Assembly: GCA_965202585.1 (NCBI GenBank)
Contig: OZ241829.1
Span: forward strand, 68,696,001 to 68,760,000
Origin: Thalia democratica
Taxonomy: Eukaryota
Length of the DNA: 64,000 nucleotides
Reading direction: 5' to 3'
Part shown: piece by piece, positions 1 through 54,490 of the stretch
How positions within the stretch are numbered: the first letter of the stretch is position 1
Layout: every line of letters begins with the position of its first letter
The notes under the pieces: generated by a model
Told to the model about the DNA's origin: nothing
Seen by the model: the letters and a program-made list of their open reading frames with translations, nothing else
Database searches by the model: none
Program-made: the position numbers and the translations under genes

Positions 1-463
1 TTTGTGCACCGTGAAATCCAGTTCTGCCGGGAGATATCGGAAACATTGAGTTAGGAGATATCTGCCTACTTCTATTTGGCAAATTAGGTGGCGGTATATG
101 TTTCAGATAACTAGGTATCACTGGTGCATCCGGATACTGATTCCTCGTTAGTTTTTGATGAAAGTTAGGCATCATCCTGCTGGGAGTGTTGGTCATCGCT
201 GCTCCGTGGAAACCTGATACGTTTGCCGAGTTTTTCATCGGATAACTAGGCATTCTGACCTGGTGATTATCCGTCATCAAAACGTGAGAGCTTGTATTGT
301 TGTGGCTTTGATTCACGTTCTGCAGGCTGAGATTATTAAATTCATCCGCCAAATTGCCAGGTGTACGTGACGAACTGGGGTAGCGAGGGTGATACGGCAC
401 CCTAACATACTGTGGCGATCGGACAGGAGGAGGTGAGGGCAAGCTGTTGTTGGGAATTGTCAT
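1..463 (-). CDS. CAF1: 5' part (low-complexity N-terminal extension) of a second CAF1/CNOT7-8 deadenylase paralog; runs off the window start
   Basis: ATG at 463-461 opens a stop-free frame to base 1: MTIPNNSLPSPPP...YPMKNSANVSGFHGAAMTNTPSRMMPNFHQKLTRNQYPDAPVIPSYLKHIPPPNLPNRSRQISPNSMFPISPGRTGFHGAQ. The last 81 codons match the N-terminus of the CAF1 at 52375 at about 70/81 residues. The nuclease domain lies outside the window, so the identity is inferred from paralogy. Confidence 0.8.
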   Translation of the reverse strand, partial: MTIPNNSLPSPPPVRSPQYVRVPYHPRYPSSSRTPGNLADEFNNLSLQNVNQSHNNTSSHVLMTDNHQVRMPSYPMKNSANVSGFHGAAMTNTPSRMMPNFHQKLTRNQYPDAPVIPSYLKHIPPPNLPNRSRQISPNSMFPISPGRTGFHGAQ

Positions 464-969
464 ATTTTATTAGTTTTGATTATCTGTAAAAATTTATAGC
501 TTTTACTCTGCTTAATGGTTGTAATAATCAAAGATGATGAGCTTTTTTTGATGAAACATGAAGAAAACTTTTTAATAACTTTTTGAAAAATATATTAAGT
601 ATTTAATTGAGTAAATAAGCATTGGTCTAGAAAATGGTTCTTTTTTTTGATTTTTTTTTATCAGATCAAAGATAATGAGTAAACAAACATATAATTTTAT
701 AAATATTAATGCAAACATGACGCAATCATATATTCGTTTAAGTTTTATTTTTCTAAATTAAAGACACTTGTTTTGTTTAAGTTACCCTTTTTTACATAAG
801 CTGCTCAATTACAAAAAAAACGTAATTGGTTTAGTTAAAAGTTAGTAAATATTTAGTTAAAAAAGGGTTAAAACATTCTTAATTCTGTAATGTAAACATT
901 TTAATATATAAATTATCTAAAAAAAAAAAGGTTTGTACCTTAAAAATATAAATTTATAAATTACATAAT

Positions 970-3615
970 TAAAAAACAAATAGGTGCTTGTTTAATTTGT
1001 TATTTTGTACAAACAAAGTAAAATCAGCTGTAAGCATTTTTCTACTATTATGATTTTCTTTGTTAAATTTAGAGACTTACTAACACAGTAATACTTAACT
1101 AAAAATTGCAAATGGTTGATTGAAAAATTACAAAACAAACTGACTAATTTATTTTTCTATAAACATCTAATGTAGAAAGTTTTACAATAATAATTTCTAT
1201 GAATTTTAAGGCTTTTAATTCAAGACTTTCATAGTTATTATAAGTTAAATAAAATTTAACAAGGTTGCCAAAAACAGCAAAAAGGAAAACAAAATTTAGC
1301 ATTTAAAAAAATTTGTAACAAAAAAACTTGAGTAATGTTGAATTTTAATAGTTTTTATACAAAAATAATTAAATTTATAGTTCAATTGATAATTTGTCTA
1401 TCATATACTATAATTCTTCAGTGTTAATTACACTTTAGAAACATTTTTAATAAACATTATAGTATAATTCTATATTTTTATACTATTAAAAATAAATTTT
1501 AATGAAAATTAAATTTAAATTAAAACTGACTAAATTAACTTTCACATTTAAATGTCTGAAAATTAACTTTTTTTAACTTTGACAGTTTTGAAAATAGATG
1601 TTTATAATGAAATTACAATTATATATAGCAGAACAGAGATTTATACCAAAAAGAATGTATGAACTTTAGAAACTGTAATATTCATATGTGTTTATATATC
1701 AAATATTGATTGAATAATTATGATTAAGCATCTTGAATTATTAGATGTTTTCAAGTATAATTTAATTAAGTAATTTTAAAAATTTACTTCTACCAATCTA
1801 TAGTAATATTTCTACTTTCAACGTTATAGACAAAGTGTTTTTATTTTTTATGTTCATTTATAAAAACATTTTTCAATCATAATCTTCGTCTCAATGAAGT
1901 TGTTTATTTTGTTATAATTTGTGAATCTTACCAGCTTAAAATTTTCTGAATTTTCGTAAAAGTAGTTTTTAATTCAGAGAAAAAAACTTAAAAATTTTAG
2001 TTACGCTTTATCTTAAAAAAATTATCTTAAAGTTTTTTTTTTTTTTTTTGATTGAGCAGTTATTACAAATAAAACATACTTTTAGACTTCTCTACTTTCT
2101 TTATTTTTCTAATAAATTTTTACCAAAAAAAAAACTTTGATTTTCTCAACCTCCTTAAATAGTGCAGCCAAAACTCAAGTATACGATATGTAAAACAGCT
2201 ATAAAAACTTTTTGCTTTTAAATAGTAAAATTTTATGCTAAAGTGTTTAGTGGCGATTTTCCCAACGTAAGTTTGGCAACTGTGCTGTCATAGTTTCAAG
2301 ATTTCTATTAGCAAGATGCCACACAAAACTCAACGTTTACAACTTTACTTAAGACAAAAATAAAAAGTTTGTCGCATTTAAGATTCTTTATTTTTAGTAT
2401 TCTTGCAACTCATATGTCAAGTACAAACACTTAATAGAAAAAATACTTCGGCAAATATCATCGTGTTTGCCAAACTGCATTAGTACATTGAAAAATGTTT
2501 GATTACAGAAATTTATTCGCAGACTTAGTCTTGTACGGTTATTATTGTATTGGTAAAAAGGTATTTATGCAAAATTAGTAATTGAGTGCTGTAAAAAATG
2601 TGTTCATGAATCAAATGATTAATAGTACAAGCGGCATTAACAGAAATAATTAGAAAAAGACTAATAAACCAAAAGAACAAATATTGAAAACTTTAAAATT
2701 GAAACTTGGTTATTCTATTTTGAATAAAATCTTAAAATAAGATATTAAAAAGTTTTAATTTTAGTATTAGTAGTTGTTTTGTTCTGTAAAATTTAAATGC
2801 TTTTTTTTTTAGATTTACAGTGTTAATATTTGTCTCTGGTACTAAACAAATATGAAACAAATATCCCAAAGTTTTCATTGCACCATTTTTACTATAAAAT
2901 TTACTTTATATTGTGGCCAAACATTTTACTATTATAACTTGTTTGCTACATTGTATCAGTTTATAAGCTTAAATTTGAGCTAAAATTTATTGTACTTTTA
3001 GTGTTAGTTTTTTATCATAAAACTAAAGGTACAGAAATTATTCAAATGTAATCTGACTAGTTTAAGTTTTATTCAGTCTTAAAAAACAGCTAAATTAAAT
3101 AAGTAAATATAGTTATTTTTTTACCCATATCTAGCCTAAACCTACAAAAATGCCTACCATCTAATAAAACATCGTTGTTTAAATTAATATTTTATTAACA
3201 AAAGAAGATATGCTAGATCTTTGATATAAATCAGAAAACTGTTTTATACCACTTTATAAAATATCAACAACTTTACTTAGTTTAGAATTTAGATACAATT
3301 AAAACATTTTATGTCGGAAAAAAAGTTTTGATTCACTACCATTACTTTAACACTTATTTCATTATATTTTTTAGATTTTAACACTAATTTTTATGGCTGA
3401 AAATTACCTGAGATTTTTTCAAATTATATGTTGGTTATTCTGTATTATAGAAATTATTTTGATCTTAAGGCCACTAAAACTCGAATTCTATCATTTCACA
3501 TTTTAAAAATAATATTTATTATAAAAATAAACTTCTAATACTAGAATTGAAAGAATTATACAATTAATTTTAGGAACTAAGGTTATGGATTTTTGGTATA
3601 CTTAAAATTTTTTCT
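970..3615 (-). mobile_element. Dispersed repeat copy 1; decayed DNA transposon remnant, possibly P-element/THAP9-like
   Basis: Colinear same-strand similarity to 60460-63160 and 46325-47350 (for example AAGTATACGATATGTAAAACAGCTATAA, GTAAGTTTGGCAACT, ACAAGCGGCATTAACAGAA). Stop-riddled minus-strand translations across the copies give KTLGFLFHIC, KNRARLSIP, FLKDLAEELQEY and KIATEYFSMKFY, loosely recalling P-element transposase C-terminal motifs. The repeat is certain; the family is tentative. Confidence 0.6.
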
Positions 3616-3734
3616 GCTTATATTTCAGATATACGCGTTAAACTCTTAACCTTGGAACGATGTTATTGCACCAAAATCTTATAATTTTAATCCTTAGTAT
3701 ATAATATTTATTGAAAGACAAAAATAAGACACTA

Positions 3735-3805
3735 AAAATATTCGGTCCTAGGACCTGGTGCACAAAAAATCATTTTGGTTATCGAGTTGCACACCACTTG
3801 TATAC
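3735..3805 (+). repeat. Short dispersed repeat, probably a transposon end; related copies at about 5401-5515 (inverted) and 30665-30775
   Basis: Shared GGTCC(T/A)AGGACCTGGTG...TTATCGAG(T/C)(T/C)G(C/T)ACA motif. The 5401-5515 copy is the reverse complement and shares AAAAAAGCGCTCAA with the 30.7-kb copy. Confidence 0.5.
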
Positions 3806-11830: not shown

Positions 11831-12153
11831 AGGAAATGTTTATTTCTAAGTTTTTAAGAGTACATAACAGTAGATATTATAAACTCTATAAGAGTAGCAG
11901 AAACTTACTTTTTAGAATTATAGTATTTAAAAGTTAAAGGTTAATAAATAACAATATATTAAACTAAATACATACTAATTTAATAACCACAAACAAACTG
12001 TTGTCAGACAGACATCATTACATAAATTAACAGGTAACTAACCTAAAAAAAAACTAAACCATTAAATCAAATATCTATTTAAAAATTAATGCTTAGGTTG
12101 TATAGTGTGTTACATAAGAAAAGACTTACTTTTTTAATTTTTTTTTGTTGGTT

Positions 12154-15100
12154 TTAACGCCTAGTTTTGTGTTTGTAAGAACGATATTTTTTGCTGCCAC
12201 GGTCAGCACCAGAACTTCTCCTTTCACTTTGCTGATCGTTCCTGGTTAGTTGCTGGATGCTGTGTGAAAACAGTCTGGAATTTTGTAGACGTCTATGAGA
12301 TTTCTTTTTGTTATCTTTCTGATTTTCATCAGAAGAGTTTCTTTTATCTTCCTTATTTTTATCAGGAGAATCTCTTTTACGTTTCCTAATGTCATCATAA
12401 GATTTTTTTTTATGTTTCCTGCTGCTTCTATAAGATTTTTTTCTGTATTCCTTATTGTCATCATAATAACTACTTTTTTGTTTCCTTTTGTCTTTAGAAT
12501 AAGTTCTATCTTTCTCATTATCATCGAAAGAATCTCTTTTAAACTTCCTACTGCTATCATAATAATTTCTCCTTTCTTCCTCATTTTCATCAAACGAATC
12601 TCTATTACGTTTCCTACTGTCATCGAAAGAATCTCTTTTACTTTTTCTAATGTTATTAAAAGTATTTATTTGATATTCTTGCTTGTTTTCTAAACGAATT
12701 TTCTTCTTTTGCTGGTTGTTATCAAAATAATTGATGTTAGGAAACTGGTTGTAGCAGTTTAGACACTGTTGGTTTGCATAGTTGTTCTGTATGTTAACAA
12801 AAGCAGGTGCGAAATTGTGCATGCTGTTTGGAAAAGATTGGTTGTAGTTTGGCGGAGGCACGGTTCTGAAAAATTCCTGCAATTGTTGTTGTTGTTGCAA
12901 CATATGCAGTTGTTGCTGGTACAATTTTTGCTGTTCATTTACCTGTATTATGAATTATTTCAGTAAACAGCTTAAAACAAGAGGTTTAAAAGCATTAAAG
13001 TAGTCTATCTAGAATTAGAAAAGGAATTTAAATTCTGTAAATAAACAGTTTGTAATTGTACGTGAGGATTTGTAAGCTGATTTTAACAACTAATGAAGTA
13101 TTTTAAATATAAAAACTTTTATATAATGTAGCACCGAAATATTACTTAGAACATAAAACCAACCATTTGCTGTTGTTGAACATAGGTTGGGTTGATTTGG
13201 AAAGCAGAAAAGTTATTGCCAGCGACCTGAACATTGTTGTTAGCGTTCTGTACATTTTTAGTACCAATGACTGGTATTTGACTAGTTTCCTTAGCAACAA
13301 AGTTGTCAGAATTCTCCGTAGCAACAAGGTTACTACGTTTCCAAGGAGCTTGAACAGGTGAGTTACCATTCCGTAGAGATGTTTTCAACTTGGTAGGGTA
13401 GTCTGATTTTTTCTCTTCTGACTTGCTGGCTTTAACTAGCTCTAAGTATTCCTTTCTAAGTTCAAGTAATGAAGTTGGAGAATTGTTTTCACCCTAGGTA
13501 GTATAGTTTGTTTCAATAAAAGAGTTCACTAACTTATCAATAAACTTATTTGGCATAAAACAATTTATCAATTTAATTTTGTATTTTTTTAAAACAACTA
13601 CTCTACTTTATAAGAAATTACAAAATTCTATTGAAAGTTTTTATTAGAAAAAACTATGAGCTAACTTATGACAAACAATGGTTAGTTTTACTTTCCGTAT
13701 ATAAAATATATAAAATTAAATGAAAACATACCTTATTTTCGTTGATAACTTCTACTTGTTTAGCAATCTCTTCAGGCAAATGATCTCTAATTGTATCTCT
13801 TTTGCATTGATCACATATGATCTGTTTATGATAATTGTAAGTAAAACAAAATATACTCAGAAATGATCAAATGTTTAAAACGCACTTATGTATGTATAAA
13901 AGTATACGATCTATTAAAATCTATTATTCCGACCCTGATTTCCATTTATAATAACCAGACATTTTATAAGACCATTGTTTTGAATATTGAAGCCTTTATT
14001 AGTCAAAATTGTTAAAGTATTAGTTATCATAAGCACACAACGTCTGAAACATTGTCAGTAAAAGTGTTAGACCGAATTTAAATAGTAAAACTGTTTTATT
14101 TGAAGCGGTTGTAAGCGTTCTAAACCAGCTGTGCTGTAAAATGAAGCCTTGTAGCTTTGAAAGTAAAGTTAAGTTTCTAGTGATGTCAACTTTATCGACT
14201 TTTATAAGACAAAACTAATAACTTAGTCTATGGTAGGAAATGTTTTTGATATTCATGGAGTTTAAGAATATTTATTTTATTTATGAAAAATCTAGCACTA
14301 CTGTAAATAATCAATTTATAAATATTAGTTTTTATTCTTAATAAGCATTGACACTAGCAAAGTTTAATTATCAGCTTAAGTATGCTGAAATACAATATGC
14401 ATATTTTACCAACAAACCTTCACTTGACATGGATCGTAAAACTCGGTTCCACCGTTTTCATTGGTTCTTTTGTATCCAGTGGTGAGTTTTTGCATGCAGA
14501 TTTTAATCGCACCCGCAAGATTGATCTCTTTTTTAAACTTGATTCCCATAAACCATTTCTTTAAATACCAATCGGAGCTGATAATTAATTATTGTTTTAG
14601 CTATCTTGAATTTTTCGTTGAATTTTATAAACTTTAACTATATATATAATGTAATGATACAACTATATATTCTTTATACTTTTTTGATAACTTTTTCATT
14701 AATTTTTTTTGGTGTTGTTTGAAGTTCACTTAGTTAGTATTTAAAAGCTAAAAAAATCAAATATTAATAAAGCTCTAAATAAGTGATAAGTTGCAAAATG
14801 TATATTTTATATTCTGAGCTCACGTGTCTTACACATTAATTAAATTTATTGTCGTTACTTTTTAAATCTTATACTACAAGCTAGATATACATACTCTTCA
14901 TCTTTAGATATTTGGCTGCAGTGCAGATTAATGTGAGCTTCATCAACTACATCATACATCTCATCCAAGTAGTATACTATTGTCCTTAGCTTTGATTCTA
15001 CATATCCTTTCCTGTGTCGAGTTTTATTTTGTAAAATTATTTTATGAAAACAATTAAAACATTTTAAGAAACCATTATTTTTTGACTAAAAAGGTTAAAA

Positions 15101-18100
15101 ACATAAATACAACTCTTCTACATACATCATATAAAGTAATTAATTAGAATAAAAATCACTAATATCGTATTAACACTTGAAATAATGTAAATTATAGTAT
15201 ACGTTACAAAATAAGTTTATCCAAGCAAAAACTATATAATACTAAACATTAGGTTATAAAATATTGTCAGAAATTATTTTAGTTTTTTTTATCTTTAATA
15301 TTTATGCATCAAATAAATCTGTTAAAAATACAAATCTTACCAAGACTCAAAACGTTTTTCATCCTTTGCAGATATGTTAAAGACAATGAAGTGCTCATAC
15401 TTGTTAAAAAATTCTGCTTTTTGAAATAGTTTTTTCCAGCTAGATTGTGTTAATAATATTTCTTTTAGTACTTCAAGTCCTCTTTTAAACTCCTGTATTT
15501 AAAATAATTGATTGTTTTAATTGTAGATGTGTTGCGTTAGTTGTACAACTTACTATAAAATTAAATTACTCTTTAATAACTAAATTTAAAGTAACTTTCA
15601 AATTTAAATATTTAACAAATTTCATTAAAAAAACAAACTTGTACTTTACACTTAGTTTAATATCGTATATTTATATACGTCCATAAAGAACCATTAAAGT
15701 TATTTTTGCAGATTATTTATACACAAACAATTATCTACAAAAGTTATTTTTTAGATATTACGTCTTAAAATATTTTTATTATAGTCTTAGAAATTGTAAA
15801 CGGACCTTGCAAATTATTTTTTTCGACGAGTCACTGGCGTTGTACATGGAGTTTATTTGAGGGTAGGCTGGTGTTATTATCGGGAGAACCCCCTCAAACC
15901 CATCCCAAATCTTAAAACCCAAGTTTTCGTCTTCTAACTCTTTCAGTATCAAAGGTTTTGGCCATATCCTGTTACATTGGTATTAGTACAATGTCTTTAA
16001 ATATTAATCATACAGTGCAGTATTAGATGATATTTGATATTTAGATAATCTTAATAAGTCATGAAAAAACTTATAGTTTAAAATATCTCTTACCTTAATT
16101 AGTTTCAGAGTTTTAAGAATATTTCAAAATTAAAAATAAACCAGTAAAACGCATTTCTTTAGAATTTGTATAAATATATGAACAAAATTACTATTTAAAT
16201 AAGGTTTGTTAAATTGAACAACTATAAGTTGATTTGTTTTAATATTCTCACCAATTACTGAAGATGTTAAAGAATTGAAACATGAGTACATTAGCAGCAG
16301 CGTCTGGAAAACTCATGCAAATTTTCGCTACAAGCATAGCGCATTGAATACCTCCCAAGTATCCCATCATGTTATTGTATATTCCCCTGTCTGTATGTTA
16401 TAAAACATTTATTTACATATTAGTTTTAAAGGTTAGCTTTTTTAATTTTTGGTAATTCATCGTAATGTGTTTACATGTTTTTCTAATAGATATAAAAAAA
16501 TAAGTTGAATTTACTTTAGTACTAAGTTTTAAAATTAATAAGAATATAAACTTTTTTGTTTTTATGACAGCTAACATACTACCTCTTTTACATAAAATAT
16601 GTTTTGTTTATACAAAATAAAATGTGTGAACTGAAATATACTTTACGTATAATTAACAATTTCTAGTTTTCTAGGAAAATAATAAACAATTGATACTAAA
16701 TTGTGTTTTAATATCTTTCTTGAACTAATATTTTGTTCAATATTTGGAGTCTTAATTTTATCATTATTTTTTTCATTACTACAAACTATATACATACTTC
16801 AAATTTCAATCCTTATTTAACCTAGTTTTTTAATTTTTCAAATAAAGTACAAACTTTTAGCCCATAGCTTGATTGCTCTCAGGGTTGTTCTGAATTGTTC
16901 TTTGTTGGGAACGAGACTCAGTATTTCTTCAGTGTTTCTCAGTCCATTAAGACTGTTAACGCACGTCTTGTCCATTTCAGTCAATATTTCGTTGCTTTTA
17001 AGGCCCAAATCATCACTTATCTCGGTTTTGTCAGTTTGCGCAAACAGAATATCAAGCTTTAAAATTTAAGTGGTTAGGAATCGGTGATACAAAAATTTAA
17101 TACCATGAAAAGTTCAACAGTTTTTTTAATATTGCAACTAACTAATTAAAAAAAAATCGTAAAATTTGTTAACTACTTTGTACAAGTTTTAGATATTTAA
17201 ACTTTAAAATTGAAAAAAAAAACATCTATATAATTTAAGAAATGAAACCGAATTTCAGTTAGAGTAAAATTATAAACTACTTTTTTAATATATAAAAGTA
17301 GTTTAATATATTTACAATTTATAACTTAATAAAAAAAGACAAACAATTTATCTTACCTCTATTCCGTCGAACACAGTCTTTATGATTGGCACAAAAGCAC
17401 TTGCTATAAGCTGTAAAAAATTTAATTTAATTATTATTAACAAGTCAAAAAACACTAATGTGATTAATTTTAAAGTTTAGTAAAACAAAAATAACTTTTT
17501 ATTAATTTTACATTGATTACACTACTTATATTAATTGTCAAGTCGGTTGTTTGACTTTATAGTTAAAAAACTACTTTTAAAAAATATGACATTAAACTAT
17601 AAATAATGTTTCCTTTTAATTATAAACTATTTATTACATTCATAGCAAAACTCTTTAATAACAACTTACAGTGATCGAGGTGGTTTCAGGTCTTTTTTCG
17701 AGCATTTGAAAGAACTCTGTGTTGAAGTCTTTCCTGCAAATGTGCTTCGGCACCACGAGTACAGCATCGATATCTGAACTTTTACCTGAAACTCCCATCC
17801 TGAAGGAACCAAACGGCATCAGTTTTCCTTCGATTGGCTTGTCTGAACTTTTTGTTATGTTCTGTAAGACAAAGATTGAGTTAAAAAAAAGATACAAAGT
17901 ATCCGAATTTACAAAAAAAAAATGAAAAGAATCTTGATACAAATCTAAAAGTAGTGGAAATGTTTACTAAATCCATTTAGGTGAGCAAAAACTCAACTAA
18001 AAATAAGTTTTTCATGTTACTTATCTTTAAAATGTTTTATCAGTTAATATGAACTTATTATATTTATTCAATATCAGTATATAACATGTTTTAGTAAACT

Positions 18101-19133
18101 AAATTAGATAAAAATTTATTGAGTGTTCTAACTTAGACAAGTTACTTATCACTTTATACTTATATTGTATTAAAAGACGTTAAATAGAGTATGACATTGA
18201 TTACATTGCGCTTAAAATAAGTCTAATGAATCTTATTATTAAATTGTAACATTGATAGATGCATCAAATAATATAGAGCTTTTGTTTAAAAATCGGATTT
18301 TGTTGAAAAACTAACCTTTTTCATAGACATATCTTTTACAAACTCCTTTACTATTGTTTCATTGAGTTTTTCTAATACAGCTGTTTTAGCTTCAGTTGAC
18401 TTTTCATCTTCAAACACGGAAGTTGATCTCAAAAGCATGCACAATTGCTTAGTTTGCAGTGAATCTAGCTCTGTGTATTTAATTAGCAATAAATTAATCA
18501 TTCTAAAACAGGAAGATTATGTAGTTTTTTTTTTCTCTACGATAGTTGTATTCTTTATTATGTTTTTTTTTTCAATATTCTTAACAAGCGACTTCTTTTT
18601 TCACCTCCCAACATTAACAAAAGAAAAGTATTCATAAACTACTTTGTACTAAAAAATTTGTCAAAAATTCCCAGCTTTATGTTTTATTCAAATATTTATG
18701 TTCAAATATAACATCAAGTCACGGGCCGTACTAAACTAACTAAAACTTTTTATTTTTATAAAACCAAACTACGATTTATACTTTATTCAATTTTGTTAGC
18801 TTTTTAACTGTATTTTATAACAAAAATTAACTATTCATAGTTTAAAGACTACAACCGTTATGATTACAAGTAAATTTGAAAACAGTTGTGCGCAATACTA
18901 TAAAATAATTTAACAAAACATTGAAAAAGTTAAACTATTGTAGAAATAATAATTGAATTTTTTAGACATTATTAGCTGTAATATTTTACACTTAGTTAAA
19001 ATGATCAATACTTAAATGAATGTTGATTTTGTAAACTACCTGAAAATATTTTAGAGTTTGTTGATTCAGATGCTTTTTTGTCATTGACATCAGTTTTGTC
19101 TTTAACATCAGTTTGTTTTTGGTTCGGACTCAT
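12154..19133 (-). CDS. PAPOLA: Canonical-type poly(A) polymerase (PAPOLA/PAP1 family), divergent, 13 exons, about 878 aa, with Q/N-rich and mixed-charge C-terminal tail
   Basis: Exons (minus): 19133-19040, 18470-18316, 17861-17670, 17410-17357, 17056-16855, 16390-16252, 15968-15806, 15492-15341, 15011-14895, 14577-14418, 13821-13732, 13493-13164, 12942-12154. All introns are GT-AG and phase-compatible; total 2637 nt. Motifs: GKLMPFGSFRMG..SDIDA (catalytic DxD), AFVPIIKTVFDGIELDILFA (third Asp), SLNGLR, TLRAIKLWAK, IYNNMMGYLGG, LPIITPAYPQ, EFKRG, W-GYVESKLR. The exon 1-2 and exon 12-13 junctions are the least certain. Confidence 0.93.
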
Positions 19134-19552
19134 TTTCAAATTTTGTTTTATTACTTTAAAATTCTAAAAAAATTAAATAACAATAAATGTTGAGGCAAAA
19201 AAATTTGGATTAATGTGTACGTTTACGTTAATGAAGCATTTTAGTACAAAAAACTGCTTAACTATTTTATAGCATATATATTACTTTGACTAACTTATTT
19301 TTTTTACGTAATAGTTGAACACAGTTTTTGTATATATTATGCTTTTAATATATACATAAGCTCAAAAATCTATTTACAAAATAATAATAGAATTCATGAG
19401 ATTATTAAAAAAATAAAGTAAGAGACCTAAAGTAAAGTGCTTAAAATTTTAAAACTTATAGTAGTAATTTCTATAAAATGATGTATGTTTTTACCTTTAA
19501 AAAAAATTATCTTTTCTACTTAAAAGAAATTTCATTTTTTACAAATGAGAAC

Positions 19553-20172
19553 TAAATAGAAAGCTCATACCTAACGAGTGCGTACTAAATATAAAATTTG
19601 TACCTAACAAGTGCGTACTAAACAGAAAGCTAATACCTATCAAGTGCGTACTTAATAGAAGCTAATACTTAGCAAGTGCGTTCTAAATAGAAAACTCATA
19701 CCTAACAAGTGCGTTCTAAACAGAAAGCTCATACCTAGCAAATGCGTACTAAACAGAAACGTCAAACCTAGCAAGTGCGTACTAAACAGAAGCTACTACT
19801 TAGCATGTGCGTACAACACAGATAGATCATACGTATCATATGCAAACTAAACAAAAATCTATTACCTAACAAGTGCGTTCTAAACAGAAAACTCATACCT
19901 AGCAATTGCGTACTTTACTGAAAGCTCATACCTAGCAAATGCGTACTAAATACAAAACTTATACCTAGCAAGTGCGTACTAAACAGAAAGCTAATACTTA
20001 TCAAGTGTGTACTAAACAGAAGCTAATACGAAGCAAATACGTATGACACAGATAAATCATACGTATCAAATGAAAACTAAACAAACTCTTACCTAACAAG
20101 TGCGTATCAAACAGAAAGCTCATAAATAAAACTTCTTACTAAACAAAAAACTCATAACTAAAAAGTGTGTGT
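19553..20172. repeat. 33-bp minisatellite, about 19 units, with a 7-unit (230-bp) higher-order repeat
   Basis: Consensus TAAACAGAAAGCTCATACCTAGCAAGTGCGTAC. A distinctive variant unit (ACACAGATA(G/A)ATCATACGTATCA) recurs at 19815 and 20045. Some units are 32 bp. Confidence 0.92.
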
Positions 20173-42608: not shown

Positions 42609-44536
42609 AACTACAACTAAATAAGATATTCTGAAAAACTAAGCCTGACTATACTTGTTTGTTTTTTTTGTTAAACACAGGTTAGATTTAATAATTTTCT
42701 TTACTACCCTAAAATGTTTATTTAAACTATTTTTCAACTTAGTATGTAACAAGTCCTCTTATATTGTATTGAACAGCAATGTATTTCAAAAATAGTGGCT
42801 TATACTTGTGTTAATTTTTTTTTTTATGTTTTGTAAATATATTGATTTTACAACTAATCTTTTCCCTACATAGACTAAAGTTGTAAAACTATTTTGCTAT
42901 TCTAAATTTAAATTTAATTAGTTTCAAGCTTGTTATTCTTTGAAATGCAATAATTATATTACCTTACATTTAGGATACGGAATGAGAAGTACCAAGTGAG
43001 TGCAGTATCGAGTAAACAGACAGGTAGTGGGACAATAAAAGATGACCAGTAAATGCAGCTTTCAATGAACAAAAATTTTATAATTGACTTTATTCTGTAT
43101 TTCACTTTTTTATTCAAACTAATTCATTATCAAGAAAAGAAAGTAAATACAAATTTAATGCGTATTAGTTTATTTATTATGTATTATTACTAAGATGAGT
43201 TAGTATCAGTTTAACTGTTAAAATACTTTTGCTAAATTGATAATTAAGCTAGCAGTGTGTAACTTATTTGTTCAGTGGATTAGATTTGGAAAATAAAATA
43301 TTTTTTCACTGGTTAATACATTTAAAATTTTTTTTTAATTTACTGTGCACAAACATACTTAATTTACTTTTCCCGAAATGCTTATTCTCTATAATTATTT
43401 TCAACTATTAATCTTTTAGTTTTCCATAAGTAAGACCCAAGAACTTTTTTGTATACATTTTTATTTCCGGAGTTTCTAATGTAAGTTTTACCTCTCACTG
43501 TAAATATATTTAGATTGGTAATTTACTTTTCGTAGTCCACTCGAGTAAGATTTAAACAATAAAAATATTATTGTGAAAATAAGGTTAATAAAACAGCTTT
43601 TACTGGAAACATAAGGAATTGCAATACTTTTTGTAAGTTTTGCATGAATATTAAGCTAGTTCTAACAACAAAGTGCAGAAATTGCTGAACTTTCCTTTAC
43701 AGAACATTATAGTCATTTGTGTGTTTCTACCGCTAGCAGCGCAGTTTAGAAACACACAGAAATTGTTTTATGCAATTTAGTGTGCATGGATCTTTATAAG
43801 CTAGACGACCACTGAATTAGAGTATATTATACTAAAAATGATTGGAACTAGTTATTATAAAAAAGATAACTTAATTTTGTCTGTTTAGGTTTTGTTTTTA
43901 AGTTTAAAATATAAGCTGTTTACAACTGAAGTTTAGTATTAGAGATTAAAAAATTAAAACATCTAAATACAACATAAAAAACATTTTTTGTAGTGAAACA
44001 CTCAATCACTTCAATTCTTATTAAAAGCAGTAAAATAAAAAATTTGATAACTGCGTAAAGTATGTTTTAGGATGATTATATTTCAATATTTTAAGACTAA
44101 CGATTGTAAAAAAAATTTTAAGTATTTTCATAGACTTAAGACGTATAAAATAAGTTTAATAAACTAAAGTTTAAAGATTTTTTTTAATAAGTTTATTTAA
44201 AATATCTTCTTTAATTCTAAAAGTTTTACCTTAATATTCTTATCTTCAATTTTAAATTTTCAAATCCGCTTAATTATCAATTTTAACTATAAATGCAATT
44301 AATCTCAATTTTGTTTAAAGAATTAGGACTAAAACTAGTTTTCAGAAATAATCAAATATCTTAAACTTGTAATGAAAATATTAAAAGTTTTTTTTATAGA
44401 GTTTAAAAACCATGGCTGTGTTTACAACAATCTTATTAAAATCATGTTTTTGTTTACTTGGTTTCTTTTATTTCCTAAAATTCTTTATAAACAATGAACT
44501 TCACCGCACGATCATCAACAACAGCATCCGAGACAA

Positions 44537-44579
44537 TCCTACGACCGGTTTCGTCCTAAATAAGACTCATCAGGCAGGA
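44537..44579 (-). ncRNA. Type I hammerhead ribozyme (canonical core, GUC cleavage site)
   Basis: Minus strand: UCCUGC-CUGAUGA-GUCUU(AUUU)AGGAC-GAAA-CCGG-UC/GUAGGA. Stem I is 6 bp with one G.U, stem II is 5 bp, and stem III is the palindrome ACCGGU. Predicted cleavage between 44543 and 44542. Confidence 0.88.
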
Positions 44580-45280
44580 ACAGTCGCGAGAAACCGCTGT
44601 TGTGATCTAGCCAAGCGGGCTTAAGTATGAAGCAGTGAAGCGACCGTTTGTGGGTAAAGTCCGAAAAAATTTGTTGATGATGGCCGAAATAAATACTGGC
44701 TAAAACTGATAAAACGAGCGTGGAGAGTAAAATCTCACATTAAGCTGACTATGTCTAAGACGTTGGGCTGTGAAGATTTGCCTGCATCAATTTTTCCTAA
44801 AAACATCTCAACTTTGTTGATGATGGCCGAAATAAATACTGGTTAAAATCTTTTAAAGTGTTTCATTTTGAAAAATATATTCAAATTATTTAAAACCTTG
44901 CATGATAAATTTAATAAGATGTTAAACTAACATATCTCTTTAATTTAAATTATTTAAATGGTTGTATCATAGTTTTAGATAAAACTTTACAAACATAACT
45001 TTTAAATATTATTTATAATGAAATCTCAGTAGCTTAAATTTCAAATCATATCATCAGTTATTAAGGACTTTAAATTTGGGAAGTGTTATAAACTAACAAA
45101 TGCTTAAATAATTAAAAACGCAATTTCCAAAAAGCATGAGAAATCAGATTTTCCTTTAAAAAAAAGATTTGTATAGAATGACAAAATTTGTATTAAAGTA
45201 GTCACATCTAAATAAAAATAAAGGCTAGGTTAACTTTTATAACATACAAAACTTAGTAAAAACTGTCTGATATATACTTG

Positions 45281-45805: not shown

Positions 45806-46324
45806 ATTATTTTGTAAGTTTCTTTCAAATGAGTGTTTATAAAATTGAGTTTAGGAAACCTTAGAATAGTGTAACAAAATATTAGTCCAAACATTAAAAA
45901 AGAATGAATCAATACGGTTTAGTAAAATTCCCAGTATTACGTTTACTACCTTACTCATCAATTTTGCTATTTATATTTTAGTTAGAAAATGCTTTAATGA
46001 TACTTAAATGTTTCTTTTATACTTTAATTCATTTTGTTTTGTTTAAATTACATTAAAAAATAAATTTTAGCAGCTTACTGTGAGTTTACTTTAGTGGCAA
46101 TGATCACTAAACAAATAAATGAAGTATTTTGTTAGATTAAATTAACAATTGCTTAGGGTTTAAGTTTCTGATATTTTCTAACACTTTATGGTTTTAAAAA
46201 TTAAGAGTTAATCTCAGTTAGTAAGTTTTTACCAATTTAAGATATCAATAGTCTCATTGTTTTCAAACAAATATAAAAATTTAAAAAATATATTTATATG
46301 TATATTTATTTTTATTTATATTTA

Positions 46325-47350
46325 GGTATTCCTGCAATTCTTCTGCTAGGTCTTTGAGAAAAGTACTTGTGCAAAGATCATCGTGTCTACCAAACTGTTT
46401 TAGTTTGGTAGACAATTGTTTGACTGTAGAACTTTACGAGGAATACTAAGTCTTGCACGGTTTTTACTGTAGTGGTAAAAAGATATTTATACATAATTAG
46501 TATTTGAGTACTATACAAAACTATATTCATGTGTATAAAAATTATTAATATAAGCGGCATTCCAGAAATTTAAAGATATATACTAATAAACTGAAAAAAA
46601 AGTTAGAAATTTTAAAATTTGAAATTATTTAATTTTATTTAAACTAAAGCATAAACTGAAAATTAAAAATTATGAATTTAAAGTTAAAAGTTGTTTTTTA
46701 TTGTGAAGTTTGAACGTCTTTACTTTAGTTTTCAGTGTGAATATTTGTCCCTGGTACTAAACAAATATGGAACAAAAGACCCAAAATGTTCAAAGGACCA
46801 TTTTTACTATAGAAATCCTAACTTATCATAGTAACCATTCATTTTAATATTAGAAGTTTTTTGTAAATTTTATCAATTAATTAATTTAATTTGAGGTAAA
46901 ACTTAAAACATGTTTTGTGTAAGTGTTTTATATCATGGATTTAAAGGTAAAGAAATAATATAAAAGTAATCTGAATAGTTTAAGTTTTATTTAATCTTAA
47001 TAAGTTATGTGCATTCAAATCAAAAAAGTCTAGTTTTTAAATAAGTAATTATAGTATTTTTACTAATATTTACCGAAAATCTAAAAAATTCTTAGCATAA
47101 AATTGTTTGATTAAATTTATTTATGATGACCTATTCTATTATCAAAATTAGCTATGCTAGACTATAAATATTAGTTAAAAAATTGTCCTATACAATTATA
47201 TAAAAAAAAATCAGCTTACATAAACTTAAATGAATATTAAGAATTACTAAAAACTTGATTAAATTTTTTTAAATTATTAGATTGCTTAATGATAAATGCA
47301 GGAAAATTATAGTATTTAATGTTATACTGTGTCAGCAGATTTCCACATAC
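46325..47350 (-). mobile_element. Dispersed repeat copy 3 (partial) of the 970-3615 / 60460-63160 family
   Basis: Shares ATCATCGTGT, GTCTTGCACG, AAGCGGCATT and ATATTTGTCCCTGGTACTAAACAAATATG blocks in the same order and orientation. Confidence 0.65.
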
Positions 47351-47414
47351 ATATAAAATAATGTATATGTTGCATAGTGTAACTCAGGCTTGTTATTTAT
47401 TTGTTTTGTTTTCA

Positions 47415-50400
47415 GGATGATTCAATCAAGTATGGTGTTATTTAGAAAAAAAGGATAATTTTAGGTATTCTTAAAAACCTTAGTCCATTTTTTGATCTCT
47501 GAATCATAAATGAGATACTGTTGTTCAAGTACAATAATAAAATATCTGATATTCAAATTTGTTTATAAACTAAATTTTTAATGTTATTAAAAAGTTTTTA
47601 GATTTATAAATTTCTTAAGAAATATGTAAAGGATTAAAAAAAATAAGGATGACTATGTATTATTAAATATTGTTTTAGGTCACTCAGGACTGGTTTAAGT
47701 GAGTTTGCCAATCACAAAAGATATCAGAGGATAAATTTTATCTGTGAGGATTGGTTTTTGGACATAATTAATGACAATCCTCTTATTTTTAAAACTGAAT
47801 AAGGGCAGAAGACTCATAGAAATAATCATGTATATTTTTTAAATAAGTTTTATTAATAAAGTTTAAGTTTACCTAAATCTAAAATCGTTATTGTTATTTT
47901 TGTTTACCTAATATCATTCCTAGAGTCTGCCATTGCATAAAAAAAGTTAAATTAGATTCACCTAATAGATAGTTTAACCAAATACTACACTTATGTTAAA
48001 AGAGTTGCTACTTCAAGTTTTTTTATTTCGTGGCAGACTCTAGGAATGACTCAAGGTAAACAAAAATAACAATAACGATTTCAGATTTAGGTAAACTTAA
48101 ACTTTATTAATAAAACTTATTTAAAAGATATACATGATTATTTTTAAGAGTCTTTAGCCCTTATTCAGTTTTAAAATTAACAGGATTGCTATTAGTTATG
48201 TCCAAAAAACTAGACTTACAAACAAAATTTATCCTCTGATATTTTTTGTATTTGGCAAATTAAGTTAAATCAGTCCTGAGTGACCTAAAACAATATTTAA
48301 TAATACTTGGTCATCCTTAAGTTTTTTAATCCTTTACATATTTCTTAAAAAGTTTATAAATCTAAAGACTTTTTAATAAGAACAAAAATTTAGTTTTTGA
48401 ACTAATTTGGATATAAGATATTTTATTATTGTACATTGAATAAAAGTATCTCATTTATGATTTATAAATCAAAAGATAGATTAAGGTTTTTAAGAATACC
48501 TTAAATTACCCTTTTTTTTCTAAATCACACCAAACTGGCTTTAATTATCCTAATTGTAAAAAGAACTTGCCAGATTTACACTGAGACTTTAAAAATTTTC
48601 AAAATTTCCTGAGTATCTAACTTTTAATCAACCCTATTTCAGAATTGTTGCTTAAAGCTATACCAATTAAAATTGATTAAATTGAAATGAGGTAAAACCT
48701 TTTAGCCTGTAGTTATTTCAATAATCACTATTAACAAAATCATCTAAAACCCACGAGCATTTAATTTAACACAGGGTTGCCATTGACTGTAGGCAAAATT
48801 TCTCCAGGTTTTCAAATTTCTTCAAGGGTTTTTTAAGTTCTTGTTTTTAGGTCTACTTTTAGTTTAAACTTGAGTTTGAGATAAAAAACTGTGATAAATA
48901 ATATTAAATTATTAAACCAAAAAGTAGACCCTTGAAGAATTTTGAAAACCTGGAGAATTTTTGGCTACAGTCAATGGCAACCTTGTGTTAAATTAAATGC
49001 TAGTAGTTTTTAGATGATTTTTTTTATAGTGATTGTTGAAATAACCACAGGATTAAAAAGTTTTATCTCATTTCAATTTAATAAATTTTAATTGGTATAG
49101 CTTGAAGCAACAATTCTGAAATAGGGTTGATTAAAAGTTAGATTCTAAGGATAATTCAAAAATTTTAAAGTCTCAGTACAAATCAGGCTAGTTTTTTTAC
49201 AATCAGGATGATTAAAACCAGTTTGGTGTTATTTAGTAAACAAAGGATAATTTTAGGTATTCTTAAAAACCTTAGTGCAACTCTAATTCTCTAAATCATA
49301 AATGAGATACTGTTGATCAATGTAAAATAATAAGATATTTTACAGCCAATATTGTTCAAAAAATTAATTTTTATTGTTTTTAGAAAGTCTTTAGATTTAT
49401 AGAATTTTTTTAAGAAATATGTAAAGATTAAATAAAATCAGGATGACTAAGTATTATTAAATATTGTTTTAGGTCACTCAGGACTGATTTAAGTAAGTTT
49501 GCCAAACACAAAAGATATCAGAGGATAAATTTTATCTGTAAGTCTAGTTTTTTAGACATAATTAATGACAATCCTGTTAATTTTAAAACTGAATAAGGGC
49601 TAACGACTCTTAAAAATAACCATGTATATCTTTTAAATAAGTTTTATTAGTAAAGTTTTAGTTTACCTAAATCTAAAGTCGCTATTTTTATTTCTGTTTA
49701 CTTTGAGTCATTCCTACAGTCTGCCATTGAATAAAAAACTAAAATTAGATCCACTAAATAGATAATTTAACCAAAAACTAAACTTATGTTAAAATAGTTT
49801 CTATTTTACTGGAATCCTAGAAAAACCTGTTTTTTGGCAAATCATGAAAAAATAGGATAAAACCTGGAACTTAAAAAATTTTGAAAAGACCTGGAAAAAC
49901 CTGGAATTTTGAAAAAAAGTCTTTCAAAAACCTTGAATTTTAAAAATTTATCAAACGTAGAATTATTTTTATTTGACACAAATTAATTACCATATAGATG
50001 AAAATTTTGTGTCCTCATTTAAATTGTTTAAATCATAAAACATATTTGAACTGCGTTTCCACTATCCTTTTAATAGTCTTATACTATTTATCACAGTTTT
50101 TTACCTTAAGCTCAAGTTTAAAGTAAAACTAGACCCAAAAACAAGTATTTTAAAAAACCTGGAGAAAAATTACCTAAAGTCAATAGCAACTCTGTGTTAA
50201 ATTAAATGCTCGTGGTTTTTGGATGATTTTTTTAATAGTGATTATTGAAAAAACCGCAGGATAAAAAAGTTTAATCTTAATTTAGTTTAATCAATTTTAA
50301 TTTGATAGCTTAAAGCAACAATTCTGAAATAGGGTTGATTAAAAGTTAGATACCCAGGATAGTTTAAAATTTTTAAGTCTCAGTACAAATCAGGCTAATT

Positions 50401-51600
50401 TTTTTTACAATCAGAATAATTGAAGCCATTTTGGACATAATTAATGGCAATCCTGTTAACTTTAAAACTGATTAAGGATTAAAGACCCTTAGACATAATC
50501 AAATGTACTATCTTTAAAAAAAGTTTTTCTTAATTATGTTTAAGTTTATCTAAAGCTTAGGTTGTGATTTTTTTACTATTTAACAATTTTCTACTATTTA
50601 ACAATTTTTTTATCCTTAAACTCAAGTTAAAACACAAGTTTAAGATCCAAAAACAAGTAGTTTAAAAAACCTGGAGAAATTTTGCCTAAAGTCAATGGCA
50701 ACCATGTTTTAAATTAAATGCTCGTGGTTTTTTGATAATTTCTTTAATAGTGGATATTGAAACAACTTTAGGATAAAAAAGTTTAATAAACTTTAATTGG
50801 TATAGCTTGAAGCAACAACTCTGAAATAGGGTTGATAAAAAGTTTGATACTCAGGAAAATCAGAAATTTTTTTAAGTCTCAGTGTAAATCAGGCAAGTTT
50901 TTTTTACAATCAGGATGATTAAAGCCAGTTTGTTGTTATATAGAAATAAAAGGGCAGTTTTAGGTATTCTTAAAAACTTAAGTCTTTTATAATTCTTTAA
51001 ATATTTAATGAGATATTGTTGTTCAATAAACAGTAAAAAGATATCTTATAGCCAATTTTGTTCAAAAACTTAGTTTTAATTTTTATCAAAAAGTCTTTAT
51101 ATTTATAATGTTTCTTTTTAAATATGTAAAGGATAAAAAACTAAAGGATGACTAAGAATTGTTAGATATTGTTTAAAGTCACTCAGGACAGAATTAAGTA
51201 AGTTTGCCAAACACAAAAAACATCTCAGGACAAATTTGGTCTGTAAGGCTAGATTTTTGACATAATTAATGGAAATCCCGTTGGTTTTAGAACTGATAAG
51301 GATTAAAGACTCATAGAAATACTCATGTATACTATCTTTAAAATAAGTTTTGCTCAATGATGTTTAACCTTTACCTAAAGCTTGGGTTTTTTTTTGCCTG
51401 GAGTCATTCCTAGAGTCTATCATTGAATAAAAACTAAGATTAGCTTCATAAAATAAATTGTTTAATTAAAAAAAAACAGTTTATTTGACAATTTAGGCAT
51501 AAAATAACTGTAAAAATGTAGAAGCTCCAAAAATTTTAAGAAGACCTAGAAAAACCTGGAATTTTGAATAAAACTCACTGAAAAACTTAGCATTTTTAGT
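47415..51600. repeat. Fold-back / mixed-orientation array of a unit of about 0.8-0.9 kb (flank plus MITE end); orientation > < > > >
   Basis: 47415-47935 pairs inverted with 48031-48555. 48031-48860 pairs inverted with 48920-49730. Further direct copies lie at about 50120-50560 (internally deleted) and 50620-51430. MITE TIRs at 48772 (CAGGGTTGCCA), 48975, 50184 and 50695; ACCTGGAA-rich MITE bodies at about 49810-50195 and 51510-51600. Confidence 0.9.
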
Positions 51601-52374
51601 GATTTTACATATATTTTTACTGTGGAATATAAGTTTAATTTGACATAGTAATTTGTAATTCATTTTAAAAATGTTTAGAATTTTCCTAGAATTCAGACTT
51701 CTTTGCAGTTTTAGGGAAAACTCAGATTGTTATCTTTTTTTTAAACTAAATTTATTAACGTAAAATAAATTTAAGAAATAATTGTTTAACATTTCTTATA
51801 TACATTTTGTTATATATTTAATATTTAACATTTTTTTTTTAAAACTAAATATTATTTTTAATTTTGGCTGACTCAGGCTAATTTTAGTTTAATGCTGACT
51901 ATATAATAAATTTTTAATAAATTTTTGAATTCAAATGTTAATTTTTAAATTTACTCCTTTTTCGCTTTAAAAAACAAACTTAGGTTGCTTGTAAAAACTA
52001 CTTTTATAAGCTTTAAAAAAATTTTTACTGATTTTTTTTTCAAAGAAAGTAACACTTTTTTGAATTTTTTAATCCTGTTCAAAAGTGGAACTCGTGCAAA
52101 ATTGACCCTTAGTGCAAAATTGGTTTCGCGCAATTTTGTTCTCGTGCAATTTAAACTCGTTTCCTTAACACTTACCTGTAATCAGATAATTGTTGTTTTA
52201 GTTTCAAAAGAGTTTTTCTAATGCTTAAACTGTTGTCGTTTAAGTGTCTTGTAACAAGTTTGTTTAACAGTATTACTATACTAAATTGCTTTCATTAGTG
52301 ATAAAAGAATAAAGTGAAAAAAGAATAATAAATAATACTTTAAATCTTTACAGATATTTTCGTGCTAATAAGAT

Positions 52375-54490
52375 ATGTCAAATTACAACAACAACTTGCC
52401 TTTGACGATGCCTCCGAGTATCCATCTTCACCCCAGTTCGCCACATGGACCTTCGGATGCAAATTTGTCAGACCAGTTCAATAATCTCAACCTGCAGAAT
52501 GTAAACCCAAGCCACCACAAGACGAACTCTCACGTTTTGATAGCTGGTGATCACCATGACAAAATGCTTATTTATCCGATGAATAACTCGGCAAACGTGA
52601 TGGGTTTCCACGGAGCAGCGATGACCAACACTCCCAGCAGGATGATGCCTAACTATCATCAGAAACTAACGATGAATCAGTATCCGAATGCACCAGTGAT
52701 ACCCAGTTATTTGAGACATATACCGCCACCTAATTTGCCTAAACTAATTAGGCAGATTTCTCCTAACTCAATGTTTCCGATATCTCCACTTAGAACAGGT
52801 TTTCATGATGCGCAAATGGCGAAAAACGTGATGCCTTACAGGAATATGATGATGCCAAACCCTCCTGGTATGATGCAGCCAAACTCTGCTGGTATGATGA
52901 CGCCAAACCCTCCTGTTATAATGACGCCAAACCCTCCTGTTATGATGCGGCCAAACTCTCCTGGTATGATGCATGACTCTCCTGGTATGATGCCGCCAAA
53001 CTACCAGCAAAGAATGATGAGTTCTCAGCCCTATCACCCTAACAATACAACAAATCAACTGGCTAATGAGAACGACACGACCTGCATTGAAGTGTGGTCT
53101 CAAGATCAGGAAAGAATGTTGAATCGCGTCAAACAACTTGCAAAGACGTACAAGGTCATCGCTTTGGACACGGAGTTTCCGGGTGACCCGTTAGGGAGCA
53201 ATGATAACTGGGCGAAAGCATCAACGCAAGAAGCATACGGTTTCGTCAAAATGAACGCTGATTGTTCGAAGATGATTGCATTGGGTAAGTATATAGTTTA
53301 TAATTATATTTTTCTATCTACAATACTTTGTTTACATTATCTTCAATCTAAAATATTATTCCCATTCTAATTATTTAACTGATTTTACAAATTTCTATCA
53401 AATTAAACACAGGCTTGTCTTTTTCTGACAAACACGGCAACAAGCCGCATCCTCACACTTTCAACTTCAACATGAGGTTCAATTTGGTCGAAGAAGAGAA
53501 AAATGATAAATCTATTAGCATGTTGAGGAACAACGGTACCGATTTCGATAAGCTGAGAGATTACGGATGCGATCAAGAAGAAGTGGTCGGTGGTCTCAGA
53601 GATTTGTTCAGAGACAAAACTATTGAATGGGTGACTTTTCATGGGTGATTTGTTATGTTTATTTTGTTAATATTAAAACAAAACTGTGAGTATGACTAAA
53701 TCGGCTTTAATTTAATTTGAAATTCAAATATGGTTGTTTGAAGTTATCAAACAGTTTTATTTGATTTATGAATATGACATTTTATCTTTTCATTCGATAG
53801 TTTAAGTATTCTTAATTTTTAATGATAATAATTATTTTTTTTTAATGGCAACCGTGGATTTTATTAAGCACCTCTTCAGATGTTTCTCTATTTTATACAG
53901 TGATACCTATATATTTGTTTTTACCTTGGCTTAACTATGTTCAAAGTATAGTTTTAAATAAGTAGTAAATTAATATGAAACTCTTTATAATACTTTACAG
54001 ATGCAAAGATCTTGCTTACGTCATCAAAGACTACAGGAAGTCCAAACTTCCAAAAAGCGTCACCGTTTTTAATGGGTTAGTTAAACTTATATGTAACACT
54101 GTTAGTTTGGCTAACAAACAGATACTTTTTTCAACTCAAGTAACAGAGTAAAGCTCTGAAGTAAATACAATAATTTTAGCTTACTCAACATGAAAATTCT
54201 TAAGTAATAATTGGTAGGATTTTTTTATAATGCATACAAACTTCAACAGGTTTGTCAGATTGCATTTCAACAAAATTTTCGACTTGAAGTTTTTGGTGAC
54301 TCGTCACTCCCATTTCGGAGGGGTGAAACACGCTGGGCTGATGAAAATTATGAATAATGTCGGTTTGGAAGTAAAGAAAGGCCATCACGGTGGAAGAGAC
54401 GCTGAAATGGCGATGGATCTTTTTTTCTACTGTGCTAAGAATGTTCCAGACTATCGCGACTACGAGAACCAGCTTTGGAGTTTGTGCTAA
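52375..54490 (+). CDS. CAF1: CAF1 (CNOT7/CNOT8/POP2 family) DEDDh deadenylase, 4 exons, 485 aa, with a Pro/Met/Asn-rich N-terminal extension of about 235 aa
   Basis: Exons 52375-53284, 53413-53644, 54001-54075, 54250-54490 (1458 nt, GT-AG, phases 1/2/2). Motifs: EVWSQD, VIALDTEFPG (D, E), YGFVKMNAD, IALGLSFSDKHGN, TFNFNMRF, GTDFDKL, WVTFHG-KDLAY (D), IFDLKFL, GHHGGRDA (H, D). All DEDDh residues are present. Confidence 0.93.

Follow-up and report, generated by a model that had tools for sequence, protein, structure and literature searches.

The 64,000-nucleotide stretch of contig OZ241829.1 from Thalia democratica analysed here (the window) holds three recognisable genes, all of them loci of poly(A) metabolism, in the order CAF1(-), PAP(-), CAF1(+), where the sign gives the strand, PAP is a poly(A) polymerase and CAF1 a deadenylase of the CAF1/POP2 type. 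The reading favoured here, with rather better than even confidence, is that a canonical-type PAP, one member of a CAF1 family and the head of a second member stand together by coincidence. The PAP would be the lineage's own canonical-type nuclear enzyme, with an intact catalytic core, a very long branch and a low-complexity C-terminus that is typical of its clade. CAF1(+) would be one complete member of a lineage-specific, multi-copy family of DEDDh deadenylases and CAF1(-) the first-exon head of another, the pair having arisen in an old inverted duplication (synonymous divergence, dS, ~0.55). The family would most likely encode 3'-5' poly(A)/RNA exonucleases that are not docked canonically on NOT1, with the P/M/N-rich head supplying other contacts. 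The more interesting part of the finding is the CAF1 family, which appears to be private to pelagic tunicates, under selection and altered at the NOT1 interface, with its catalytic motifs intact as far as they are visible.

The product of CAF1(+) consists of a low-complexity head (amino acids 1-235, composition P16/N14/M12%) followed by a nuclease domain (amino acids ~236-485). In a search of PDB sequences the C-terminal 72 residues of exon 1 matched CNOT8 (E=1.8e-5), CNOT7 (E=2e-4) and S. pombe Caf1 (E=4.9e-4), and exon 2 matched Pop2 (E=1e-8, 38.8 bits), S. pombe Caf1 (E=1.3e-5) and, weakly, human CNOT7 (21 bits). Exon 4 had no significant match in this search. Its neighbours in a protein language model, at scores below 0.9, were fragments from the C-terminal ends of DEDDh nucleases (PAN2, RNase_T, CAF1), which is a lead only. 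The Pfam CAF1 domain (PF04857) scored 15.8 bits on exon 1 alone, under the cut-off of 24.2. The DxE motif (human D40 and E42) is present, ALDTEFPG of CAF1(+) being aligned to AMDTEFPG of CNOT7/8, and it is invariant in 8/8 family sequences. FHGCKDLAYVIK (exons 2/3) and GHHGGRD (exon 4) match the third Asp (human D161) and the H-x4-D motif (H225, D230) by inspection and spacing only.

The CAF1 of the window resembles CNOT7/CNOT8 and yeast Pop2/Caf1 in being of the RNase D type, DEDDh; D-T-E-F-P-G aligns and exon 2 is collinear with Pop2 80-159. A long low-complexity N-terminal extension is also found in S. cerevisiae Pop2, where it is Q-rich and not P/M/N-rich as in the window. Unlike CNOT7/8, the window CAF1 is ~30% identical in the alignable part, reaches 21-28 bits, several-fold less than would be expected of an orthologue, and has a C-terminal third that is unrecognisable.

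Seven further CAF1 relatives, counted as 90%-identity clusters, were found among 5.8 billion proteins, and all of them are first-exon open reading frames (ORFs) on marine metagenome contigs. The seven ORFs were the same with the whole exon and with a restricted region as query, and no annotated or transcript-derived member of the family was found among the 5.8 billion proteins. A scan of JGI metagenomes with a profile of the CAF1 family gave one weak unrelated locus only. Across the seven relatives, identity in the part of exon 1 that encodes nuclease sequence is 71-84%. The ratio of nonsynonymous to synonymous substitution (dN/dS, omega) is 0.13-0.18 in the nuclease part, calculated against two relatives, and 0.38-0.51 in the head. 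The variable head keeps the islands YPNAPVIPxY and ISPxS..P.SP...GF.GAQ. Judged by copy number and substitution rates, the CAF1 genes are a lineage-specific, multi-copy family under purifying selection and not single-copy CNOT7/8 orthologues.

The helix of exon 2 that corresponds to the NOT1-contact helix of Pop2 and CNOT7 carries basic residues. At the end of this exon HMMER aligned EEVVGGLRD--LFRDKTIEWVTFH of the window with FEFSQLLMDSGLMMDDSVTWITYH of Pop2, so that VVGGLRD..LFRD stands opposite Pop2 FSQLLMDSGLMMDD and an Arg is found at the position of the Met. Human LLMTSG presumably corresponds to yeast LLMDSG, and the Pop2 Met is therefore taken to be human CNOT7 M141, an equivalence that depends on how HMMER aligned the window with yeast Pop2, where a gap of 2 residues is close by, and on the match of the two motifs. 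Arg is also found at the L147-equivalent of CAF1(+) under either placement of the 2-residue gap. Two relatives reach exon 2, and these have Lys/Arg (L002) and Lys/Lys (L006) at the M141- and L147-equivalents. The hydrophobic contacts to the MIF4G domain of NOT1 (human M141 and L147, with A137/E138) are thus not kept in the three members of the family that could be compared. According to PMC3510486, M141 of CNOT7 is the central hydrophobic residue in contact with NOT1, the single change M141R is enough to abolish the binding, and L147 also takes part in the contact. Since basic residues are kept where CNOT7 needs hydrophobic ones, canonical docking on NOT1 would be lost, unless NOT1 has co-evolved, and the enzymes of the family may act outside CCR4-NOT. 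The family differs from CNOT7/8 both in being multi-copy and in the Arg/Lys at the M141- and L147-equivalents (PMC3510486).

CAF1(-) is represented in the window by the first part of its first exon. Its head is 74% identical to that of CAF1(+) over 129 amino acids, and 84% identical in nucleotides over 387 bp, in inverted orientation. The dS between the two is 0.55 and dN/dS is 0.38. Because this dS is near the distance between the window PAP and its relative L005, the inverted duplication is taken to be old. The frame exits the window before the nuclease part is reached, and the CAF1 label of this gene is for that reason given on paralogy of the head only. An earlier note on this DNA had described CAF1(-), PAP(-) and CAF1(+), in this order, as the intact host genes of the window, all acting on the poly(A) tail, and had suggested that these enzymes may be lineage-specific duplicates. 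The gene order and the lack of any other recognisable gene are borne out; the intactness of the left CAF1 is not, as 154 codons of its head are all that the window contains. The duplicate origin agrees with the two copies in the window, the seven marine clusters and the purifying selection.

A polypyrimidine tract followed by ACAG stands ~20 nucleotides (nt) before the ATG in 5/5 relatives with upstream sequence (L001, L002, L006, L007 and L008; GCAG in L007), as it does in both window copies (within 464-492 and 52340-52374). In the PAP gene TTTTAG is found one base before the ATG (18502-18510), and this acceptor-like site would favour the ATG at 18501 as the true start. The sites before the CAF1 and PAP start codons are plausible acceptors of a spliced leader or of an intron in the 5' untranslated region (UTR).

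Three further observations concern the CAF1 family. The island of the head that is conserved best, (N/S)L(S/A/L)(D/N)(Q/E)FNNL(N/S)LQN, is found at 52459-52494 and 361-396, and also in P0001 and P0002. It follows the pattern of a class 1a leucine-rich nuclear export signal (hydrophobic-x3-hydrophobic-x2-hydrophobic-x-hydrophobic) and is a pattern match only. A PAM2-type PABP-binding motif was considered for the head and rejected on inspection, the L/F spacing being unsuitable. In L002, a Tara contig that carries the P0006 gene, the homologue of exon 3 (1960-2091) reads F*DIAYVIRDY against CKDLAYVIKDY in the window, with a TAA in frame two codons ahead of the catalytic Asp. Exons 1-2 of L002 look intact, and the copy may be a young pseudogene or the stop a contig error.

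The PAP gene is recognised by domain matches on individual exons. PAP_NTPase (PF20750) gave 47.0 and 51.6 bits on single exons (cut-off 27) and PAP_central (PF04928) 38.9 bits on a single exon (cut-off 27.1); yeast and bovine PAP structures were matched with 45-47 bits (PDB sequence search, HMMER). GKSSDIDAV is aligned to GPGSDIDTL of yeast Pap1, and LDILFA to IDILFA of the gar and Ciona PAPs, which shows that the catalytic Asp triad is present. The K and the Y of the LRAIKLWAK...IY segment are kept. The region of exons 7-10 is ~45% identical to, and collinear with, the metagenomic protein P0012, whose product carries PAP_RNA-bind (PF04926). The C-terminal region contains a Q22/N19% block (amino acids 596-672) and a K18/R16/S14/D12% block (amino acids 673-857), the latter with four (R/K)DS(F/P)D(D/E/K) motifs; the junction of exons 11 and 12 (GT..AG, phase 0) is a model only.

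In its PAP_NTPase and PAP_central domains and its Asp triad the window PAP is like PAPOLA/B/G and the PAPs of ascidians and Oikopleura, in which a long non-catalytic C-terminus is usual. It departs from canonical PAPs in its identity of 37-45% (not 60-66%), in having SLNGLRNTEEIL for SLNGCRVTDEIL, in a short deletion before the PIITPAYP motif, and in that the N-terminal ~24 residues were not found. Where canonical PAPs have an S/T-rich region, its tail is a Q/N-rich block with repeated (R/K)DSFD(D/E) units. Contigs of the DNA run X2 over PAP (12510-18509) fall into identity classes of 99+%, 95-99% and 90-95% in similar numbers, which points to a very heterozygous source, or to individuals that were pooled or related.

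Relatives of the PAP were collected by an exhaustive search with exon 4 and by local BLAST. P0012 is the best full-length relative, with 49% identity over 505 amino acids. It was obtained from an intron-free 2.6-kb contig of a JGI/IMG sample and is taken as mRNA-derived; its own best single-domain relatives are ascidian and Oikopleura PAPs. The maximum-likelihood tree places the window PAP and P0012 within the tunicate clade (Oikopleura, Styela, Phallusia, Ciona, Clavelina; support 100/100), grouped with the ascidians rather than with Oikopleura (support 89/81). This position is equally expected for an old lineage-specific duplicate. The relatives of both PAP and CAF1 are confined to short contigs (1-2.6 kb) of Tara and other marine metagenomes and metatranscriptomes. 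The tree and this marine distribution agree in indicating a pelagic tunicate as host, one whose genome is very AT-rich and evolves fast.

The PAP clade is strongly diverged. In the catalytic region the window PAP is 37-45% and P0012 43-49% identical to canonical PAPs, whereas pairs of canonical PAPs from Ciona, Styela, gar and amphioxus have ~60-66% identity and the Oikopleura PAP has 54-56% to these. The stem of the clade measures 1.72 substitutions/site and the tips 1.86 (window) and 0.82 (P0012), against ~0.2 for ascidian tips. The signature SLNG(L/V)RNTEEIL is found in the window PAP and P0012, and nearly all other PAPs have SLNGCRVTDEIL in its place. RNTEEIL also occurs on the metagenomic contigs L005 and L009, and the clade has at least four distinct members in marine data. 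L005 is 79% identical to PAP exon 4 (dS 0.51, omega 0.25), and the introns can still be aligned at 71%; L009, a Tara scaffold with 28% guanine plus cytosine (GC), is 53% identical. In L009 (198-912) the homologues of window PAP exons 2 and 3 are joined in one ORF, which points to an intron gain or loss inside the clade.

P0012 too has a C-terminus of low complexity, in which a Q/N/Y-rich block precedes a basic tail. Its likeness to the window tail marks the low-complexity C-terminus as a feature of the clade and also favours the joining of exon 12 to the PAP gene. The acceleration and the RNTEEIL signature that P0012, L005 and L009 have in common are better explained by a fast-evolving lineage than by an isolated paralogue, and the window PAP is probably the lineage's own nuclear PAP, a fast-evolving orthologue on a very long branch. 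The earlier note had described the PAP and CAF1(+) as complete, with catalytic residues kept, strong divergence and long low-complexity extensions. CAF1(+) is complete, and PAP is complete if counted from the first ATG; no counterpart was found of the ~24 residues with which P0012 begins. The PAP triad and the CAF1 DxE agree with the alignments, the third Asp and H-x4-D of CAF1 with inspection only, and the divergence is confirmed for both PAP (37-45% against 60-66%) and CAF1 (~30% to CNOT7). The extensions are real by composition, and the PAP tail is not special to this copy, as P0012 has one.

The three genes are widely spaced. From the 3' end of PAP to the start of CAF1(-), which follows downstream on the same strand, the distance is 11.7 kb; from its 5' end to the start of CAF1(+), which is oriented divergently, it is 33.9 kb. 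The gaps are filled by repeats, a palindrome array and a tandem array. The flanks of the two CAF1 genes share no sequence beyond ~25 nt of 5'UTR. With gaps of 11.7 and 33.9 kb there is neither a shared transcription unit nor tight spacing. The arrangement has points in common with the spliced-leader trans-spliced operons of tunicates (Ciona, Oikopleura), in that PAP(-) and CAF1(-) are on the same strand and acceptor-like sites precede all three ATGs. It is unlike them in the size of the gaps, intergenic distances in such operons being tens to hundreds of bases, and in the divergent orientation of one pair, and it is not an operon.

In two run searches the sequencing runs that carry the locus carry its introns as well (share 0.79-0.92), for which reason they look like DNA, and runs of the same sample have a share of 0.00. 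Four runs were compared with the PAP gene: X2 gave a uniform, DNA-like cover, and X8-X10, of which the RNA status and organism content are not established, gave chance matches of 18-26 nt only.

Table 1. Features of the three poly(A)-metabolism genes, in window positions
Feature	Position	Strand	Description
CAF1(-) first exon, 5' part	2..463	-	154 codons; start codon 463-461; P/N/S-rich head; runs off window start
Acceptor-like polypyrimidine-ACAG site	481..492	-	~20 nt upstream of CAF1(-) ATG; matching site before CAF1(+) (within 52340-52374)
PAP gene	12154..18501	-	12 coding exons; all junctions GT-AG; frame closed; 857 amino acids
PAP exons 1-6	18501-18316, 17861-17670, 17410-17357, 17056-16855, 16390-16252, 15968-15806	-	
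PAP exons 7-12	15492-15341, 15011-14895, 14577-14418, 13821-13732, 13493-13164, 12942-12154	-	
PAP exon 2	17670..17861	-	FGS...DID motif, first two catalytic Asp (HMMER against yeast Pap1 and bovine PAP)
PAP exon 4	16855..17056	-	opens with LDILFA (third catalytic Asp); holds clade signature SLNGLRNTEEIL
PAP exons 11-12, low-complexity C-terminal region	12154..13493	-	N/S-rich linker, Q/N-rich block, K/R/S/D tail
CAF1(+) gene	52375..54490	+	4 coding exons (52375-53284, 53413-53644, 54001-54075, 54250-54490); all GT-AG; 485 amino acids
MMxPNxPG-type repeat insert	52846..52965	+	motif scan; private to CAF1(+), absent from all aligned relatives
CAF1(+) exon 2	53413..53644	+	includes helix aligned to NOT1-contact helix of Pop2/CNOT7; Arg for Met and Leu contacts
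Poly(A) signal AATAAA	54553..54558	+	63 nt past CAF1(+) stop codon

The window has a mean GC content of 24%, with coding exons as GC-richer islands, and contains no N runs. The published range for tunicates is 28.0-42.7%, and Pegea sp. has been described as AT-rich (PMC13746493). A Pfam scan of the ten longest remaining ORFs gave no credible domain and so no further recognisable host gene in the window, a negative that is weak at 24% GC, as genes with small exons may escape such a scan without RNA. An Rfam scan of the window gave no match at the gathering score and no tRNAs. A hammerhead HH9 match below threshold is found at 44520-44591 (-), with 25.4 bits (gathering 52) and E=0.053, inside a GC-richer island.

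A dispersed repeat of ~2.5 kb is present in three copies of ~70-72% identity (1097-3611, 46359-47205 and 60498-63013); the repeat is found next to CAF1(-) and also downstream of CAF1(+). A tandem array with a unit of ~33 bp (19517-20183) lies ~1 kb upstream of PAP. Between 0.8 and 5 kb upstream of CAF1(+) there is a large nested array of palindromes and direct repeats (47412-51600), the arms of which have 85-86% identity. A Penelope-like fragment was seen as an open frame of 346 codons at 58066-59103 (-); its C-terminus is GIY-YIG-like by eye, and it has no Pfam match. On either side of it stand inverted repeats of 248 bp with 97% identity (57837-58081 and 59341-59094).

Several observations weigh against the coincidental neighbourhood of an orthologous PAP with members of a CAF1 family that is not docked on NOT1. 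The tip of the window PAP is about twice as long as that of its sister P0012 (1.86 against 0.82), and no convincing upstream PAP exon was found by tblastn with the N-terminus of P0012 for the ~24 residues with which that protein begins; given the long tip and the absent segment, a specialised paralogue would fit too. The survey of PAP and CAF1 copies covered the window and the protein and metagenome collections, and a second conserved PAP or a canonical CNOT7 may be present elsewhere. The equivalence with M141 depends on the gapped alignment and the motif match described above. None of the three genes was seen as a transcript in the run searches, the locus-bearing runs being DNA-like. Finally, that 54 kb should contain three genes acting on poly(A) tails and no other is a genuine coincidence, which is explained here by argument only.

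That the PAP is a specialised, fast paralogue, like testis PAPOLB or germline PAPs, with a conserved PAP elsewhere in the genome, is a possibility of some weight, although we doubt it. In addition to the long tip and the absent N-terminal segment, the periodic K/R-D/S tail is unusual, and some of the RNTEEIL-clade members in marine data, at least four in number, are possibly paralogues. However, the long stem is common to P0012, which is mRNA-derived and has the full PAP architecture. The window gene is moreover a 12-exon gene and not a retrocopy, with an omega of 0.25, and no conserved-type PAP of the same lineage was seen among the matches examined, which is a weak negative.

The earlier note had further proposed that the PAP and the two CAF1 genes form a lineage-specific, co-regulated module of writer and eraser enzymes, for example for the control of germline or maternal mRNA, which their disordered extensions would target to condensates. 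In such a module shared chromatin or enhancers would drive the three genes together. The three recognisable genes in 54 kb do all act on poly(A) tails, all are diverged and have low-complexity regions, and an inverted CAF1 pair flanks the PAP. The proposal is nevertheless unlikely. The gaps, the divergent pair and the repeats between the genes are not operon-like, the CAF1 flanks share no non-coding sequence outside the short 5'UTR segment, and the PAP tail is a clade-wide feature; the targeting to condensates is pure conjecture. As CAF1 is multi-copy, to find one of its loci close to a gene of poly(A) metabolism is no great surprise. An illustrative chance estimate is ~0.07 such neighbourhoods per genome, with 10 loci of CAF1, 30 genes of the poly(A) machinery, a genome of 500 Mb and +/-60 kb assumed, and the window is one among hundreds of thousands screened. 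With a multi-copy CAF1 and dozens of poly(A)-related genes, such a neighbourhood is unlikely in any given genome and not extraordinary. The position of PAP between the CAF1 copies is probably a coincidence of gene order.

A related proposal joins the CAF1 evidence to co-regulation. The CAF1 genes private to pelagic tunicates, with DEDDh kept, NOT1 docking lost through a natural change of the M141R type, and a P/M/N-rich head gained that has a few conserved short motifs, would shorten tails independently of CCR4-NOT. The inverted pair would both flank the PAP and be co-regulated with it, for instance in oocytes and embryos or as the generations alternate. This combination is improbable as a whole. 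Lastly, decaying, functionless CAF1 duplicates with leftover catalytic motifs, as the unrecognisable exon 4, the in-frame TAA in exon 3 of L002 and the lack of transcripts in the searches might suggest, are very improbable in view of a 485-codon frame that is intact over four exons with consensus splice sites and AATAAA, an omega of 0.13-0.18 in the nuclease part (two relatives), the 71-84% conservation of the N-terminal nuclease part in seven relatives, and the acceptor kept before the ATG in all copies with upstream sequence.

The cluster itself would matter only with conserved linkage and co-expression, and is at present an unexplained neighbourhood. If the favoured reading of the CAF1 family is true, it would be a natural experiment on NOT1-independent deadenylation, in which CAF1 has been multiplied and kept under selection while the NOT1-binding residue was replaced. 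Together with the PAP, it would also show how fast core enzymes of mRNA decay and polyadenylation can evolve in thaliacean-like tunicates.

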